Below are positions 1-15,310 of a DNA stretch of 64,000 nt, in pieces (position 1 is the first letter of the stretch; every line of letters starts with the position of its first letter). The notes below the pieces were generated by a model that was given only the letters and a program-made list of their open reading frames with translations, was not told the DNA's origin and made no database searches. The translations under genes and the position numbers were made by a program. This stretch comes from Selaginella moellendorffii (Eukaryota; Plantae; Lycopodiophyta). The DNA lies in the NCBI RefSeq assembly GCF_000143415.4, contig NW_003314374.1:476030-540029 (forward strand), given 5' to 3'.

Positions 1-774
1 ACTTTCCCAATTATACTTTTAAAACCCATTGCAACCTGACAACTCCACCAAGCCCTAGTTTTTCAAAAGCAAGAGATTTTTAGAGCATAAAGAAGGAAAT
101 CCATCAAAGTCAGTAAGGGGAGAAGATAACAAGTAGGAGAAACATGGGGCAGATTCTTCAGCATTTAGAACAAGCACAACAAGCAAGAAAAATAACAAGC
201 TTTGCTGGTGAGGTAAGGCTGACACTTCTGCCTCCAGCCAGGGAAGGGGCTTATGGACACCACCACCACTATTGAGTAAAACTCTACAATCACAACCATG
301 GAAACCATCGTTCATCAGTGCATGGACACCAACTCCATTACCCTAGGGAGGAAGTCTGGACCACCAACACCAAGCAGGACTTCAACCATCACCACCAACA
401 ATGATTTCAAGGCCACCATCATTGGCTTCCACCACCTTTGTCTTCAACACCAACTAAGGAGAGAGGGCCAGCGTCTCATAACAATCTCAGGTATGTTCCT
501 CCATTGTGGCTTGCTTGCTTTCACAATGGTACATACAAGACTTGGCATACACAACAACCACCAACTCCTCGGCTAGCAAGCTCCACTCCAGCAGGCCGCC
601 ACCACTTGGGTCGAGCTCCTCTGCCTCAGCCATCACCACGTTCTGGAGCACACAGCAGCAGCAGCAATGGTCCAGTGGCAGAAAGCACACCACTGCCACC
701 TTCTTAGTGTTCCTCAACACACAGTGGTGCACCAAAGCTGGTCGCTCTTCAGGCTTTCGAGACTCCAGCTATCC

Positions 775-1270
775 TAGGTATGTGTTCTTCTGCATTGTTG
801 GACACCTCCTTTTACATAATTCTCGCAAGAGAGGTAAACATAGCCACCATCCTCCCCCATCGGGTAATCATCCAACACCACCACCACTTTCTGCACACAG
901 TACCACCACCGCCAAATGTTGGTTGCCCTTCAAGCTTTCAATCCAATATATGTATTCCTCTGCATTGTTAAACACCTCCTTTTACATAATTCTCACAAGA
1001 GAGGTAAACACAGCCACCATCCTCCACCACTGGGTGATCATCCTCGGCCCTCTTAGCCTTCCTCACCACAAGGTGGCAGCCACGGTCTAGGATGCCATGC
1101 ACCACTGCCACACAGTGGTAGCAATGGTGCAACGCCACTGCCAAAAGCTGGTCAAGGTTTCACCTCCCAGCAGTTCCACGTATGTGTTCCTCTGCAATTC
1201 TGGCTACCTCCTTTACATTGGTCCTCGCAGGAGATCTCAACACGGCCACCATCATTCCACACCACCTCCT
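775..1270. repeat. Three degenerate direct repeat units, each starting TATGT(G/A)TTC(C/T)TCTGCA
   Basis: Units at ~779, ~949 and ~1181. The first two share CACCTCCTTTTACATAATTCTC.CAAGAGAGGTAAACA.AGCCACCATCCTCC. Confidence 0.6.
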
Positions 1271-1420
1271 TCACCACTAGATGATCCATACAGTGTTAGC
1301 CATTGAACCCAAGGGAAAAGCACACCGGCTTGTTACCTCCTTGACATAATGTTTGTGAGCATTTTGGAGCTCCTCCATCTCAGCCACCACCTCTAGCTCA
1401 CAAGCATCATCACCATTCTC

Positions 1421-1858
1421 GTGATGATCTTGGAAGTGTCAAATGGCGTCCACATGGTGATCCTAGAACTTTTGACTAGCATCCACATGGTGATCTTGGA
1501 AGTGTTGATTGGCATCCACACAACGATCTTGGACATTTTAACTGGCATCCACACGGTGATACTAGAAGGGTCGATTGGAACCCTCACAATGATCCAGGAA
1601 TTCCTAGCAATCCCAACAGTCCCAGCAGCCAACAACCCCCTTCCAGCTCTTCAAGGTGCACACTTCTCTCTGGCAACAACAGGAGCAACAGCTTTGGTGT
1701 GGATCCCGTTTGTGGCCATTGTGCTCATCGTCCTTGCCCTTGTGGTCATGCTCCTCATCAAGTGGAGACACTCTCGACGACACCAAAGAAGGGACAAAGC
1801 TTTTCTTGTCTACAATGTTGTGACCGACATTGATAAGTATGGCAGAGCAGCAGTCTAG
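1421..1858 (+). CDS. Orphan single-pass membrane protein candidate with 11-aa repeats; start uncertain, may be a gene remnant
   Basis: 33-bp tandem units encode GIH(M/T)VILE(V/L)LT about 5 times, followed by a hydrophobic segment (LVWIPFVAIVLIVLALVVMLLI) and a basic stop-transfer tract (KWRHSRRHQRR). Confidence 0.35.
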   Translation: MMILEVSNGVHMVILELLTSIHMVILEVLIGIHTTILDILTGIHTVILEGSIGTLTMIQEFLAIPTVPAANNPLPALQGAHFSLATTGATALVWIPFVAIVLIVLALVVMLLIKWRHSRRHQRRDKAFLVYNVVTDIDKYGRAAV

Positions 1859-2198
1859 CAGTGATTCAAAGCTTTAAAATCACTAATTGCGCATCATATC
1901 TGTATATCCGTTGCTGCTTGATGTTGACTGGAGATTTGTCCGGTGCGCGCTTTTCTGCTGCTGCTGAAATTGAGCTTTGGCTATAAAACATAACACAGAA
2001 TCTGTGAAGAGAACAATTTTGATCTAATGCCCAACATCAAGCACAAATTCGAAGGTGTCAGCTTAAAAAGTCAAGGAGAACAAAGTTTAGACTTATTTTC
2101 TGATTATTTGTCCATCTTCTAGATTGGTTTTAATGGCAAATCTCTTTTTAGCCATTCTTTTGAAGAATAATTTTAAATTTATATAAACAAACCTCGCC

Positions 2199-2670
2199 TC
2201 AAAAAATGCATCCAGGGATGCATTCTTCATACATCAATTTCTCAACCTTGCTCTGCCTATTTTCTTCTCTGTGTTCTAAGAATCGAAGAGCATCATCCTT
2301 CTCCATACCATATTTACAAATTAAAACAAAGCTACTACTTGCTCGCAATGAAGACAGAGTCTTTCCAGAGGCCTCCAGCGTGTCTGCATACCTGGAAAGC
2401 TCTATTTTGCCAAGAAAGTTTCTCATCTCAAAAGCTTTCTGCTTAAGCACAAGAGTGAATTCTTTGAAATGAGAGATTTCTGACACTCACCCTTTGCTGC
2501 TTAGTAAGGCCCAGCGCTTTCACATCTTTCCTGGTCATTGACTTGAGCGATTCAACGCTGTCCCATCCCTTCCTGACAAAGATCTTGGATGTTCCAGCAA
2601 GAACACTGCTGCCGAGGTAGTCATCTAGATTATCAGGGGCAGATCTATCCTTTGCTTCTGTGCCCTGCAT
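2199..2670 (-). CDS. Small tandem SAM-like domain protein (~139 aa), two exons
   Basis: Exons 2670-2491 and 2438-2199 join through a phase-0 GT-AG intron of 52 bp. The sequence GWDSVESLKSM...QQRKAFEMRNFL...YADTLEASGKTL...KYGM...RFLE resembles the N-terminus of plant SAM-like/AhpC-TSA proteins (recognised from memory). Confidence 0.65.
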
Positions 2671-3832
2671 TGTTGCTCGTCTTGTTGAGAAGAAAGAAGC
2701 TCTTTAAAATGCCCTGGTAGTCAAATAGAAAGTAGAATCAAAGTGACATTAATCCTCCTCCTAAGCTTTAAAAGTAAAAGTCTCACATCCCAACTTTGTC
2801 AAGATGATGTCGCAAACATTATGTGAATTGACGACAAATTGCTGCATGCCCTGCCCGTCAGCATGATACGCGACTTATAGTTTAAATAAAGGAGAATAGA
2901 GGGAAAGAGAGAAGAATGTTTGCATGACCAATGCTACCAAACAACAAGATCTCTCCACGCATTCATTCTTCACCTCACGATCGCTCCCTACGTCCAGCTA
3001 TTGGAGGGATCCTCTGAGATCTTCATGAAAGAGGTTGTGATCATAGAGATTATTATAGAACAAGCCTGAATGCAGAAAGCTCAGATGCATGCGTGGTCCT
3101 TCATGGAGCACAGTACTGAAGAACAGCCTTCAGCAGAAGCACCAAGAAAAAAAAGAGAATATGATTCTTCCAAGGCCATCCTAAAGAAAAATCGCTTTGA
3201 TCCTGGATCCTGGGAATCGCTTGTGCCCTCGCCACCCGGGATCTGTTATATTCTAAGATTGTCATTCTGTGTTTACTGTTACTGTGCTTCGACTAGCATA
3301 GAACCTAACCTATCTCCTTTCAACAATGTGACATAAACTTGACTCTCATGGTAGGTAAAATGTCACACTAAAAAAATAACAGGATACAAAGTTGTGGACA
3401 AAAGTTCCTCACTTCTCTTAGAGGAGTTTGTAAAGCAAAACACGCAACCTTTAGATCTTCAACGCTCTCCCCCCTGAAAAACTCCAGAACAAATTTAGCT
3501 TTCCCAACCCGCTTAATTAAGAAAATTTCTCAGCGCAATTAAGTAAATGGCTTTCGAAAGGCTGGAGACCATCCACCACATTGCATCACTAAATACTATT
3601 TGGAAAATAGAGTTCCTAACATTTTCACTCAAACTTGTGAAATCTATATAATCCACAATTCACTCAGTAGATTACCAAGGACTTGTCCGTCTGTGCTCAG
3701 CACATTGTAGCTGTGGAGAAGCATGCACAACTCACTAGCTGTTTGAAACAACTCCTAGTTGAAAGTGGAAACTAGCTCACAAAGAAAGTGAAAACAATGA
3801 TCTCCTTGATCACAAGTTCTCACAAGAGCTCA

Positions 3833-4450
3833 TCAAAGAGGTTTCACAAACATTGCCCGATTCACTTGAACTAACGACAAATCCCCGATGGGCTGAATTG
3901 CCTGTCCACCAGCAACTACCACTGGCTCCCGCGTGTGATCATCTAGAACAGAACTTACCACTTAGATTGAGCGCCAGGAATTTGTGTGATCAAACTTACC
4001 AAACAACGTGTTGAAGGACGAAGCTGGGGGTGTTGCCAGATGGTTCAGGCTCACGTAAGTGAGGAGAGTAAACGGAATTGCAAGCATGAAAAGCCCAGGA
4101 ACCACAACAGCCCAATACCTGCGAGAGCTAGAGTAAAACCAAAGGCACTAGCTTTGTAGTGTTTCCAAAGCTTACCTGTCGGGATAGTACGTTATTCCAA
4201 GATAATGAAGCCAAGGTTCGGGGAGATACGCCCAGATAACATACACTCCTGGATTCGTAGTTCGCCACTGTCAGCGATTCAGATTGAGAATCTAAAGTAT
4301 TCACTCACCAAATGCGACTATGGTTGAGATCGCTCCCACGAATGCATAAACCTCTGCGGGCTTTGTTCCTTGACTCTTGCGTTTCTCGTGATCCTACAAT
4401 CCAGGAAAAAAGAATAATGGAAAAGGTTGATCGATCGCTTGATATACCAT
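3833..4450 (-). CDS. PIGP: GPI-GlcNAc transferase subunit P (PIG-P), copy 1, intact
   Basis: Coding exons 4450-4448 (ATG only), 4393-4309, 4248-4176, 4118-4000 and 3942-3833, all GT-AG. Product: MDHEKRK..EVYAFVGAIST..WAYLPEPWLHYLGITYYPDRYWA..LNHLATPPASSFNTLFDDH..IQPIGDL. Confidence 0.88.
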
Positions 4451-4894
4451 TCACTTGTCGGCCTTCTCTCCGGGCCGTGGAACTTTCTTGTACTCGAAAT
4501 TGTTGATGTCTACGTGCTGCTGGATTGCCTGCATTCCAGAAACAATTAAATCTTAAGCAAGGATCAAGAGCACGCGGTTAATTACCTTGAGCTCTTCCTC
4601 GAGTGTGGTGGGCTTTCTCTGCTTGAAGTTCTTGAGAATCCCCTCCTTGGAAAGGGCCTGCGTCACTTTTAGAAGCTCCCAATCCCTCTCGTCGCGCTCG
4701 TGGACGACCTCAGTTCTAGAATCCCAGAAAATAAATTAAAGCGAAAAAAAGAATGCTTGTTACCTCCCAGCAACGATCTGAGCGATGCCAACGTAGCCAA
4801 TGACGGACCCAGCTATGATCGGGAGGCCAAAAAGAAAGAACCGATTCGACCCACTCAGCCTCCGTCCCTTCTGGATCCCCCGCACAGTGGACAT
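4451..4894 (-). CDS. COX16: Cytochrome c oxidase assembly factor COX16, copy 1, intact (112 aa)
   Basis: Exons 4894-4764, 4715-4586 and 4528-4451, all GT-AG. Product: [65 protein letters not shown], matching plant COX16 motifs. Confidence 0.88.
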
Positions 4895-4905
4895 TTGCTC
4901 TAAGC

Positions 4906-4913
4906 AAACCCTA
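4906..4913. promoter_or_regulatory. Telo-box (AAACCCTA) just upstream of the COX16 start
   Basis: Exact motif 11 bp from the ATG at 4894. It is mutated in copy 2 (TGGGGTTT). Confidence 0.5.
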
Positions 4914-5086
4914 CTAGGTAGCTGAAAAAAATCTTGTCACCTTGAAAGAAAAAATTGGATTTTTGAAAAAAAAAATTCGGGGCGATTTCTGTGTAAATAA
5001 AGAGCTACATTAGCTTGCAAACGTAGGTAAGTGAGACTAGTGTTAGAAATCTACCAACATGGCTACGAGAAGAAAGAAGAAAATCT

Positions 5087-5587
5087 TCATGATTCCTTGA
5101 GAACTTCCTCCGGAATATCTTCCTCTTCCTCGTTCTTGAGCTCTTCATCTTCCATCTCTGCAAGCCAAGCAAAATGCAAAGAGAAGAACGAATAAGAAAA
5201 ACCTGGACGAGAAACGCAAATGGTACTTACTCTGGATTTCCTCGTCGGTGAGCTCCGGAGCGTCCTCTCCCTCGACAGCCGGAGCTTTGTCGTCGACTTC
5301 TGCCGCTGCTGCGTCGTCTTCCACAACAATCACTGGAATCGTTGCGTCTTTATCCGTCGTGGGATAGTAGTACTCGGATTGAGTGTCCTGGAAACACAAA
5401 CAAGATGGAAAGAAAAGAGAGGAAGATCAAGTAAAGTTCTTATAACCAAAGAGAAAAAGTGAGAACCTGGTAAGAAGCCATTGGAACCTTGGTACAGAAC
5501 TGAAAAGCCCAAAGCCCCCTTTAAAAACGCACTGACTGTACCGAAACTCACTGAGAGTGAGACACGCTTCACTGGCAAACTTTCCAT
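5087..5587 (-). CDS. Small, highly acidic protein of unknown function, four exons
   Basis: Phase-consistent splice model: MESLPVKRVSLS|FCTKVPMASYQ|DTQSEYYYPTTDKDATIPVIVVEDD...EEIQ|KMEDEELKNEEEEDIPEEVLKES*. Confidence 0.5.
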
Positions 5588-5704
5588 GCAATGGAAGAAT
5601 ATGCAGCTTGATTCATGGCAGCCTCCGATTGGTTACAAAGAAATAGAGGAGAAACCAAAATTTTTACCACGTACCTTTAAAGAGCGCTCGAGAAAGTTTT
5701 GATA

Positions 5705-7798
5705 TTACAAGTCAGTATTGGTGGTGAAAGTTTTGACAAAACTCGCCAGTAGCTCCTTTCCTCCCAGCTCGTGAATCTTGGCCAGTGCACGCTTCTCGAT
5801 CTGGCGAACTCGTTCTCTAGAGAGGTTGAAATGGTGGCTCAGCTCCTCCAAAGTTCTGTCCCTTCCATCGCCAATGCCATAGCGGAGTGTCAGGACTTCC
5901 TTCTCCCTGGGCTTCAGGAGATTGAGCACTTTGTCGAGCTGTTCCTTTAGTAGCGCCTTCTCGGCAACTAGAAGAGAGGACTCTACTTCCGGGTCCGGTA
6001 GGATTTCCTGTAGCAAAAACAAGAAAAGAAAAGAAAAAAATTAACAATTTTTTTAGTGTCGCAAGAATATGGTTTTGCTTACCAAAAGAGTGACGTTGTC
6101 GCAACCTGGTACATTGTCGTCCAATGACTTTGGATGTCTCATAAGATTGGCAGCCAGATGGACTTTTTGCGCAGTCGTTCCAAGGATCGTGGCCACTTCC
6201 TCGTTTGTTGGAAATGTACCACGTTCTTCGAAGATCCTGGCTCTCGTCTTTAAAACTCGAGTGTGCGTATCAAATAGATGCATCTGAAAGACAATGTTTC
6301 TTTTAGATTTGAACTGTACTTCTCGAAGTGAACAGGAGCTTACAGGCACTTGGCACATTATGCTGCGTTTCACCGATGCCCTCCTTACGGATAGCTCAAT
6401 CCACCAAAGTACGTACGTTGAAAGCCGGAAACCTCGAGACGTGTCGAACTTTTCAACACCGTGAAGTAAACCGTTGATCCCTTCCTGCAGTACAAAGCCA
6501 AGTTGATAAATGCATGAAGAAAAACTAGCTCGACAGAGAAACTTTGATACTTCACCTGTATAAGATCCTCTATCGTCGTCCCCTTCAAACCAAACTTTCG
6601 GGCCACTTTGATCACGAGCCCGAGATTTGAAGAGACCATGTTGGTCCTGCATCTTTTTGCATGTTTGAGCTTCCTCCGAAGCTCTTGAGGTTCTATTTTC
6701 AATGCCTCGGCCCATTCTCTGAATGTTGGTTCACGTCCAAGCTGCTCGCTCATGCTGGTAAACAAGGCTTCCATTTTTATATGCTCCTGAGATTAAAAAA
6801 ACAACGCACGAAACAGTAATTTAGCCAGCAAGCTCAGCATTTCATCATATATCTACAAAGAAAGTACCTTGAATTCCCACCTGAATACCATTGATTGCTT
6901 CCAGCTCCTCGGCAGCAGACATTCGAGTCCTCCTAGATATTTGTGGACAGTACCGGTCTCTGCCTACGACTTTTCTCGATCCGGCTGGAAAAAGTCCTTT
7001 GATCGTCTCCCCATCTCCGTCCTCCATCTCGTTCTTTCTCTTCTCTGCTGCCTGTGCTCTTTTCATCATCCTTTGTTTGCGCCTCCTAGAGGTAACCGCT
7101 ACTTCCACGTTGTACTTCCTCTCTAAGCTCTCCGCCTCTGTTGAAAGAAGTTCATTGGCTTGCAATGCAGTTTCTTCCGCTTCTTCTGTTGTCTCAATCC
7201 TCGCCACCTCTGGAAGTTGGATGCTCTGCTCGAGTCCCAAAGTTGATCCAGCAAGTGGTTCGTTCGCGAGTTCCATTTCGCCAGAATCATCAGCAATGGC
7301 CTCGGCAGCTTCTCGAGCTGCTAGAACCGCCGCCCTTGCAAGAGCCATGGCTTCCTCGGCCGCGGCAATAGTCGTTGCCTCGTCACTAGCCAACCAAGCC
7401 TCAGTCTCTGTAAAACTGGAAGTGGTGGTCACTGCTCTCACTTGTAAGGTGCCAGCCACCTTCCATCTTCGTTCTGGGCCTTCGTGATTCCTATGCGGCA
7501 AAGAACTCCCAGCTAAGAAAATAAACTTCTATGGCATCAGTAAACGACTTACCATGCTAGAACCGAGCTCCAAAGCCGTGGATTTGCATTGTGATGATCC
7601 AATTTTGCGAAGCATCCCCTCCTTCTGGAGCAAGGCTTTTGACGTCTCAACGAAGAAGTGCCTGGAAATTGGATAGAAACCACTCAGCGAGAGAATTCCC
7701 ACTTCTTCCCACTTACTTGGAATGCCAGGCGATAGAACAGAGCTACATTCCAGCACTGCGCCGCCAGTCGCAGCTGCCAAGCCTGCCACCACTGCCAT
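5705..7798 (-). CDS. Nuclear-encoded plastid sigma-70 factor, SIG2-like, multi-exon
   Basis: Transit-peptide-like N-terminus and EAMALARAAVLAAREA motif. Region 2: NLGLVIKVARKF..EDLIQEG..EKFDTSRGFRLSTY..WWI. Region 4: LKPREKEVLTLRYG..LSRERVRQIE. Confidence 0.9.
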
Positions 7799-14276: not shown

Positions 14277-14709
14277 ATGTCCACTGTGCGGGGGAACGGA
14301 GGCTGAGTGGGTCGAATCGGTTCTTTCTTTTCGGCCTCCCGATCATAGCTGGGTCCGTCACTGGCTACGTTGGCATCGCTCAGATCGTTGCTGGGAGGTA
14401 ACAAGTATTCTTCTTTCACTTTGATTGATTTTCTGGGATTCTAGAACTGAGGTTGTCCACGAGCGCAACGAGAGGGATTGGGAGCTTCTAAAGGTGACGC
14501 AGGCGCTTTCCAAGGAGGGGGTTCTCAAGAACTTCAAGCAAAGCAAACCCACCACACTCGAGGAAGACTTCAAGGTGATTGCTCTTGATATTTGCTGATG
14601 CCAGTAAGATGTAATTGTTTCTGGAATGCAGGCAATCCAGCAGCAAGTAGACATCAACAATTTCGAGTACGAGAAAGTTCCACGGCCCGGAGAGAAAGCC
14701 GACAGGTGA
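14277..14709 (+). pseudogene. COX16: COX16 copy 2, frameshifted
   Basis: Inverted duplicate of 4451-4894. A 10-bp deletion (TCCAGAAGGG) after codon 6 produces TGA at 14304-14306. Downstream exons and splice sites are retained. Confidence 0.85.
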
Positions 14710-15310
14710 ATGGTATATCAAGCGATCGATCAACCTTTCCATTCAGTCTTTTTGCCTGGATAGGATCACGAGAAACGCAAGTGTCAAGGAACACAGAGGT
14801 TTATGCAATTCGTGGGAGCGATCTCAAACATAGTCGCATTTGGTGAGTGAATATTTTGGATTCTCAATCTGAATCGCTGACAGTCGCGAACTACAAATCC
14901 AGGGGTGTGTGTTATTTGGGCGTGTCTCCCCGAACCTTGGCTTCATTACCTTGGAATAACGTCCTATCCTGACAAGTAAGCTTTGGAAATCTACAAAGTT
15001 TTTTTACTGTTAGCTCACAGGTATTGGGCTATTGTGGTCCCTAGGCTTTTTATGCTTGCGATTCCGTTTGTTCTTCTCATTTACGCGAGTTTGAACCATC
15101 TGGCAACACCCCCAGCTTCGTCCTTGAACACCTTGTTTGGTAAATTGGATGATACAATCTATCCTCTTTTTTCTTATTGATAAGTGGCACATTCTAGATG
15201 ATCACACGCGGGAGCCAGTAACAGTTGCTGGTGGACAGGCAATTCAGCCCATCGGGGATTTGCCGTTCGTTCAAGTGAATCGGGCAATGTTTGTGAAACC
15301 TCTCGGATGA
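14710..15310 (+). CDS. PIGP: PIG-P copy 2; reading frame open through compensating indels
   Basis: Same five-exon structure as copy 1. A -7 and a +1 indel in exon 2 give GTQRFMQFVGAIS in place of GTKPAEVYAFVGAIS. Ends FVKPLG*. Confidence 0.65.

Follow-up and report, generated by a model that had tools for sequence, protein, structure and literature searches.

The 64,000-nt stretch of Selaginella moellendorffii DNA analysed here (hereafter the window) carries on its minus strand a gene for the mitochondrial complex IV assembly factor COX16 and, directly behind it, a gene for PIG-P, a subunit of the ER enzyme of GPI-anchor synthesis. The minus strand was read over 3300-5500, and exon borders were set by script (Table 1). 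The COX16 coding sequence (CDS; 4894-4451) has three exons, 339 nt in all, and encodes 112 amino acids, the last codons being GAC AAG TGA, while the PIG-P CDS has 390 nt and encodes 129 amino acids. The spacer between the COX16 TGA and the PIG-P ATG is 0 nt, and the two open reading frames (ORFs) share one frame with the TGA alone between them. The last coding exon of COX16 and the next 3 nt form one 81-nt internal exon; in RNA contigs, the joints 4527/4585 and 4392/4447 have this 81-letter side in common. A preliminary description, made from the letters of the sequence, had claimed that the stop abuts the start, that a GT donor follows the PIG-P ATG at once, that the ensuing 54-nt intron is free of ATG and that no space exists between the ORFs for a poly(A) site and a promoter. 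Every one of these sequence statements is confirmed. PIG-P has no other in-frame Met until residue 65, so its sole usable start lies within the exon in which COX16 ends; any PIG-P mRNA therefore has to include COX16 coding sequence. This conclusion rests on the architecture of the locus and is independent of the contigs described below.

Table 1. Features of the COX16-PIG-P locus and its surroundings (positions within the window)
Feature	Position	Strand	Remarks
Unannotated spliced 80-aa ORF	5087-5481	-	exons 5481-5467, 5387-5231 and 5157-5087; very acidic; no Pfam match
Minimum 5' leader	4895..4931	-	contig of run X5 to 4913 plus 18 letters matching the second haplotype; ATG-free
COX16 coding exon 1	4764..4894	-	ATG 4894-4892, weak context; splice 4715/4764 in four RNA runs
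COX16 coding exon 2	4586..4715	-	sequence and RNA contigs
COX16 coding exon 3	4451..4528	-	stop TGA 4453-4451
PIG-P start codon	4448..4450	-	adjoins the COX16 stop, same frame; last 3 nt of the common exon
54-nt GT..AG intron	4394..4447	-	between PIG-P ATG and codon 2; ATG-free; removed in four of four RNA runs
PIG-P coding exon 2	4309..4393	-	sequence and RNA contigs
PIG-P coding exon 3	4176..4248	-	sequence and RNA contigs
PIG-P coding exon 4	4000..4118	-	allelic T/G at 4001, Phe to Leu
PIG-P coding exon 5	3833..3942	-	stop TGA 3835-3833
3' UTR	3589..3832	-	contig ends between 3761 and 3589 (records 4, 7 and 9)
Copy B, inverted duplicate of the whole COX16-PIG-P unit	14277..15310	+	91% identical, introns included

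Both proteins are readily recognizable. The COX16 product matches Pfam PF14138 with an E value of 5.8e-20 over model positions 1-79 of 79, and this full-length match comprises the N-terminal transmembrane segment and the charged C-terminal part of the family. Conserved W, LEEEL and EYK.IPRP motifs are shared with aligned plant COX16 proteins, and the nearest protein Atlas clusters are all COX16; a word-index protein search gave no match beyond COX16 itself. Because S. moellendorffii has a separate plastid CCS4-like relative, which is a different protein (10.1101/2022.10.14.512171), the COX16 described here is of the mitochondrial type. The PIG-P product matches Pfam PF08510 with an E value of 1e-34 over model positions 2-121 of 121, and its core motifs EVYGFVG and WAYLPE.WLH..GITYYP are in place. 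In the alignment, it lacks only the plant N-terminal extension that bears an SPRR.LSLSR motif.

Of the words sampled from 3700-5100, 20-41% occur in twenty RNA runs of the species, a share that fits spliced RNA. Contigs of four runs, one each from four studies, were placed on 3000-6200, and in all four runs each of the six introns is removed, including the 54-nt intron after the PIG-P ATG; the 81-nt exon is spliced at both sides in every run. Single assembled contigs of 843-1130 nt span both ORFs. Record 7 of run X5 (843 nt) extends from 4913 to 3761, record 9 of run X7 (898 nt) reaches 3589, and record 1 of run X1 (1130 nt) covers both ORFs and then continues into exons of the upstream neighbour. 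The preliminary description had made its reading depend on a spliced link from COX16 exon 3 to 4393, and this link is present in RNA-derived contigs of the four studies. No form other than the joined one appears in the contigs, where it is well represented. It counts against a bicistronic reading that the RNA support consists of assembled contigs rather than single reads, and since the X1 contig joins the upstream neighbour to COX16, contig continuity alone is no proof of one molecule. The earlier claim of a single transcript carrying both genes thus stands insofar as contigs from four studies run through both ORFs, but these are assemblies and fall short of single-molecule proof. With this caveat of assembly, one spliced nuclear mRNA bearing COX16 and PIG-P is well supported at the transcript level.

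Upstream of COX16, the CDS of a plastid sigma factor ends with a stop at 5707-5705, and the unannotated 80-aa ORF sits between this gene and COX16. The exons of this small ORF share contigs of 2.3-2.5 kb with sigma-factor exons in three RNA runs, and run X2 also removes 5675-5607, directly behind the sigma-factor stop. The ATG of the 80-aa ORF is preceded by other ATGs. The arrangement could reflect introns in a 3' UTR, a small gene that overlaps or another pair of co-transcribed genes. The contigs of the upstream transcript end at 4946-4992 on the minus strand, only ~15-60 nt before the first base of the COX16-PIG-P contigs (4913-4931), and the two are joined in run X1. From these nearly touching ends it follows that the COX16 promoter must overlap the 3' end of the neighbour or that some transcription reads through.

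Both proteins are 100% identical to S. moellendorffii database entries. GenBank has two genes with gapless abutting CDSs, namely, COX16 (EFJ08041.1) and a partial PIG-P (EFJ08040.1), and RefSeq XP_002990996.2 is exactly the 129-aa PIG-P model, including its start and the coding exon that consists of the ATG only. The COX16 cluster of the protein collection holds no RefSeq (XP) protein for COX16, and for this reason RefSeq appears to keep only PIG-P on the mRNA, COX16 apparently having been dropped through one-CDS-per-mRNA annotation. Such annotation may hide a real protein at this locus. A second haplotype scaffold, GL377620.1, carries the same pair with an identical junction and a COX16 CDS without internal ATG; between the haplotypes, 4 of 129 residues differ in PIG-P and 1 of 112 in COX16. 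Protein searches returned no further intact COX16 or PIG-P of the species, each being found once per haplotype. At 4829, 4616, 4060 and 4001, the RNA contigs bear the alleles of the second haplotype and not those of the window. This accounts for an odd one-letter insert at the 3943/4002 joint; a different splice site was considered there and rejected, the oddity being the allelic T/G at 4001, which is also found in haplotype 2.

The whole unit occurs a second time in the window as an inverted duplicate, here referred to as copy B (the pair described above being copy A). Homology extends from ~25 nt upstream of the COX16 ATG to ~35 nt after the PIG-P stop. In copy B, a 10-nt deletion leaves a 9-codon ORF in the place of COX16, the rest of COX16 being open in another frame, while the TGA-ATG-GT junction is kept and there is still no internal ATG. 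The PIG-P of copy B is open at 128 aa when homologous splice sites are used, with an altered EVYGFVG motif. Exon divergence between the copies is 4.9% for COX16 and 8.1% for PIG-P, against 17% for the introns, and dN/dS between them is 0.37 for COX16 and 0.38 for PIG-P, values that indicate purifying selection on both ORFs for most of the time since duplication. RNA runs of two studies (P2 and P4) contain words of copy B. An intact copy beside one with a collapsed first ORF offers a built-in comparison for scanning, reinitiation and evasion of nonsense-mediated decay (NMD).

Comparison with other plants shows that the arrangement is derived. We aligned PIG-P from Sphagnum, Diphasiastrum, two ferns, conifers and angiosperms, and all of these other plant proteins have 35-80 extra N-terminal residues with the conserved SPRR.LSLSR motif. 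In Diphasiastrum and Spirodela, a single exon encodes both these N-terminal residues and those that correspond to Selaginella exon 2, and later intron positions match. Because the homologous residues fall within one exon in these two plants, the 54-nt intron and the mini-exon consisting of the ATG are new in the Selaginella lineage. The preliminary description had proposed a search for the same adjacency in other plants, and none was found in a moss, another lycophyte, an angiosperm or a fern. Sphagnum PIG-P transcripts have only 155-235 nt upstream, with COX16 absent, and COX16 is likewise absent upstream in the PIG-P transcripts of a further species. By tblastn, no COX16-like sequence lies within 6-10 kb of PIG-P in Spirodela or Diphasiastrum; PIG-P is not the neighbour of an angiosperm COX16 gene, and, by gene calls only, no other called gene lies within 4 kb of a fern COX16. 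Since the pair was not found in any other sampled species, deep conservation is unusable as an argument for its function. Fusion proteins were likewise not seen: none of 48 COX16 matches among 1.84 billion representatives extends C-terminally to the COX16 domain, and none of the best 120 PIG-P relatives has PF14138.

Plants in general prefer a purine at -3 and G at +4 of a start codon. The COX16 AUG (gcaaATGt) has C at -3 and U at +4 and is weak by this general preference, which may not be Selaginella's own consensus. In the spliced RNA, the PIG-P AUG (tgaATGg) has U at -3 and G at +4. The weak COX16 context and the G at +4 of PIG-P were already part of the preliminary description and are as it described them; the U at -3 is an addition, and it means that the PIG-P AUG is not a strong site, which counts against the reading favoured below. 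The nearest ATG upstream of the COX16 start is at 5010, the leader being ATG-free up to there.

After its start codon, the spliced COX16 CDS is free of ATG in all three frames over 336 nt, and the same is true of haplotype 2 and copy B. Composition and genomic density predict 5.1-5.6 ATGs, and mononucleotide shuffles of the CDS give an expectation of 5.1 with P(0)=0.005, in agreement with the earlier claim that about five should have been present. The 64-kb window has one ATG per 60 nt, and of all 336-nt stretches within it 0.3% on the plus strand and 1.6% on the minus strand are ATG-free; the PIG-P CDS, for comparison, has 5 internal ATGs in 390 nt. Under nulls that keep the Met-free protein, the depletion is only marginal, with a mean of 2.2 ATGs (P=0.05) for synonymous resampling and a mean of 1.3 (P=0.21) for codon permutation. 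A monocistronic angiosperm COX16 CDS contains 7 out-of-frame ATGs, its protein likewise having no internal Met. The absence of internal Met was considered as a mark of selection and rejected, as other plant COX16 proteins are Met-free too. Several homologues in the alignment have no internal Met at all, so that the absence of in-frame Met is not special, and what is special is the absence of out-of-frame ATGs. The preliminary description had also placed Met in angiosperms at two positions that read Ile here (PIIAG and KAIQQ). This is only partly right: Met is found in 4 of 15 homologues at PIIAG, the others having Leu, and in a single one at KAIQQ, where Leu prevails.

A weak context of the first ORF (ORF1) and depletion of AUG before the second ORF (ORF2) have been tied by mutation to leaky scanning in green-algal bicistrons (PMC11291117), which bears out the earlier statement that such features are hallmarks of algal leaky-scanning polycistrons. 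At the Selaginella locus these hallmarks, namely, the weak context and the ATG-free ORF1, are real. We favour, with a probability of roughly 60%, the reading that the locus is an obligate bicistronic nuclear gene in which PIG-P is reached mainly by leaky scanning. The data show how the two genes are built and spliced, that RNA contigs link them, that ATG is depleted and that the locus is derived; beyond this, we infer that both ORFs lie on a single molecule, that no separate PIG-P mRNA is made and that both ORFs are translated by the following mechanism. One capped and spliced mRNA of ~0.85-0.9 kb would begin about 20-40 or more nt upstream of the COX16 AUG and would contain the COX16 ORF of 112 codons, the UGA and then directly the AUG of the PIG-P ORF of 129 codons. 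Part of the scanning 40S subunits would initiate at the weak-context COX16 AUG, and the remaining subunits would pass 336 ATG-free nucleotides and initiate at the next AUG, that of PIG-P, with a possible contribution from termination and reinitiation at the UGA-AUG. As for its origin, a rearrangement in the Selaginella lineage may have removed the coding region of PIG-P's own first exon together with its promoter, and the rest of PIG-P may have become joined to the end of COX16 through the new 54-nt intron.

The main biological tension concerns NMD. In Arabidopsis, NMD acts on the bicistronic readthrough RNAs that intergenic splicing produces, and translation of the second ORFs is rare (PMC9768141). 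As four exon junctions lie downstream of the COX16 stop, this counts against a bicistron. It is conceivable that the junction complexes downstream would be removed by those ribosomes that bypass the COX16 AUG and go on to translate PIG-P. If the bicistronic reading is true, copy B, with its ORF1 shrunk to a 9-codon upstream ORF (uORF), is a natural experiment on how ORF2 is reached. On balance, we lean toward the wider picture, in which two unrelated housekeeping proteins of a vascular plant, one for complex IV assembly in mitochondria and the other for GPI-anchor synthesis in the ER, would be made only from one zero-spacer mRNA that arose by recent gene capture via a new intron, is stable despite four exon junctions after its first stop and is convergent on the mammalian PYURF-PIGY pair.

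The main live rival is an internal transcription start within COX16, which we consider unlikely but take seriously. Here, two overlapping transcripts would exist, a long mRNA serving COX16 only and a shorter one on which the PIG-P AUG comes first, with the ATG-free COX16 sequence doubling as the PIG-P leader. Because COX16 has no internal ATG, any start downstream of 4894 would, after splicing of intron 2, yield an RNA with PIG-P as its first ORF. Overlapping transcripts are indistinguishable in contigs, which in run X1 also merge neighbouring genes. Moreover, the second genes of Arabidopsis readthrough loci usually retain their own start sites (PMC9768141). Against these points, no contig end or loose end falls inside COX16 in the four runs, except for one at the allelic SNP 4829, the common 81-nt exon is without exception spliced on both sides, and the depletion of ATG begins right at the COX16 AUG and extends over the entire CDS instead of being confined to its 3' part.

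Ranking next, and also improbable as the principal route, is termination-reinitiation on the same bicistronic mRNA, by which ribosomes that finish COX16 at the UGA would start again at the adjacent AUG. Reinitiation is efficient mainly after short uORFs, whereas ORF1 here has 112 codons, and it predicts neither an ATG-depleted ORF1 nor a weak ORF1 context. The 0-nt spacer does suit this mechanism, which profits from a stop and a start only a few bases apart, and in some Auxenochlorella bicistrons the two codons overlap (PMC11291117); reinitiation would also clear the downstream exon-junction complexes after translation of COX16. However, mutational tests in algae favoured leaky scanning over it (PMC11291117), and it is rare at Arabidopsis second ORFs (PMC9768141).

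That PIG-P persists only as an untranslated relic ORF within the 3' UTR of COX16, with the GPI-GlcNAc transferase using another PIG-P or none, is very improbable. Arabidopsis second ORFs are rarely translated (PMC9768141), and the N-terminal region of the other plant PIG-P proteins compared is absent, both of which would suit a relic. A relic would hardly retain a full-length Pfam match, an ORF left open in each haplotype and even in copy B, a dN/dS of 0.38 with exons twice as conserved as introns, and precise splicing of all four PIG-P introns in RNA contigs; no other PIG-P of the species was returned by protein searches that could take its place, and the N terminus of human PIG-P is short too. 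Least credible is readthrough of the UGA into a COX16-PIG-P fusion, which the preliminary description had also held to be a less likely alternative: one UGA is all that separates the two in-frame ORFs, but a shared frame has a 1-in-3 chance, the UGA is followed by A, which is not among readthrough-promoting contexts, the N-terminal mitochondrial inner-membrane anchor of COX16 would misplace an ER subunit, and no fusion was seen among the COX16 and PIG-P homologues above.

With an obligate bicistron as the preferred reading, the locus is apparently an undescribed case of a rare two-protein messenger in a vascular plant, its translation being predicted. The pair is undescribed in the full-text literature searched, although the abutting CDSs are already in GenBank. 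Mammalian PYURF-PIGY resembles it in that a small subunit of the GPI-GlcNAc transferase is the downstream ORF after the ORF of another protein. Murakami et al. are said to have reported in 2005 that PreY/PYURF is mitochondrial. The two systems differ in the subunit (PIG-Y and not PIG-P), in the upstream protein and in the lineage, and the likeness is convergent, not homologous. The preliminary description had drawn this parallel on the premise that PYURF and PIGY share one mRNA, and RefSeq does assign both to one mRNA (PMC4339237).

The readthrough RNAs that arise by intergenic splicing in Arabidopsis (Kurihara et al. 2022, PMC9768141) are similar in that an intron runs from the 3' end of gene 1 into gene 2, leaving no chance of termination, and in both systems the stop of ORF1 lies upstream of exon junctions. 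The Arabidopsis RNAs are minor by-products beside monocistronic mRNAs and are degraded by NMD, mostly as noise, whereas the joined COX16-PIG-P form is the only form in the contigs and, unlike in Arabidopsis, the only way for PIG-P to obtain a start codon. Proven bicistronic nuclear mRNAs are very few in land plants, the standard case being CDC26-TTM3 (Lorenzo-Orts et al. 2019, as cited in PMC11291117 and PMC9768141). In those accounts, it too is a land-plant nuclear mRNA with a small upstream protein ORF and an unrelated downstream ORF; it is described as deeply conserved from green algae to land plants (PMC11291117), whereas COX16-PIG-P is absent from the moss, other lycophyte and angiosperm flanks.

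A close parallel in organization is with the nuclear polycistrons of green algae, for which exclusively polycistronic loci were described by Gallaher et al. 2021 (PMC7896298) and which are known from Chlamydomonas, Chromochloris and Auxenochlorella (PMC7896298, PMC11291117). Neither COX16 nor PIG-P is mentioned in the main texts of these two papers or in the searched supplements of PMC11291117. In the algal loci, two independent ORFs, each with its own start and stop, share one mature mRNA, an organization that assembled contigs support for COX16 and PIG-P. As at the Selaginella locus, ORF1 is short, has a weak start context, is depleted of ATG and is separated from ORF2 by a very short distance. 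Some Auxenochlorella loci overlap stop and start (PMC11291117), while COX16 and PIG-P abut at 0 nt, and small mitochondrial assembly factors, of which COX16 is one, are frequent partners in the algal sets. Unlike the algal loci, the one described here belongs to a vascular plant and not a chlorophyte, an intron splits the start codon of ORF2 from its second codon, and translation is predicted. If this reading is true, algal-style leaky-scanning polycistrons work in a vascular plant too, and the locus would represent a young, datable birth of such a gene through loss of an N-terminal exon and gain of a new intron.
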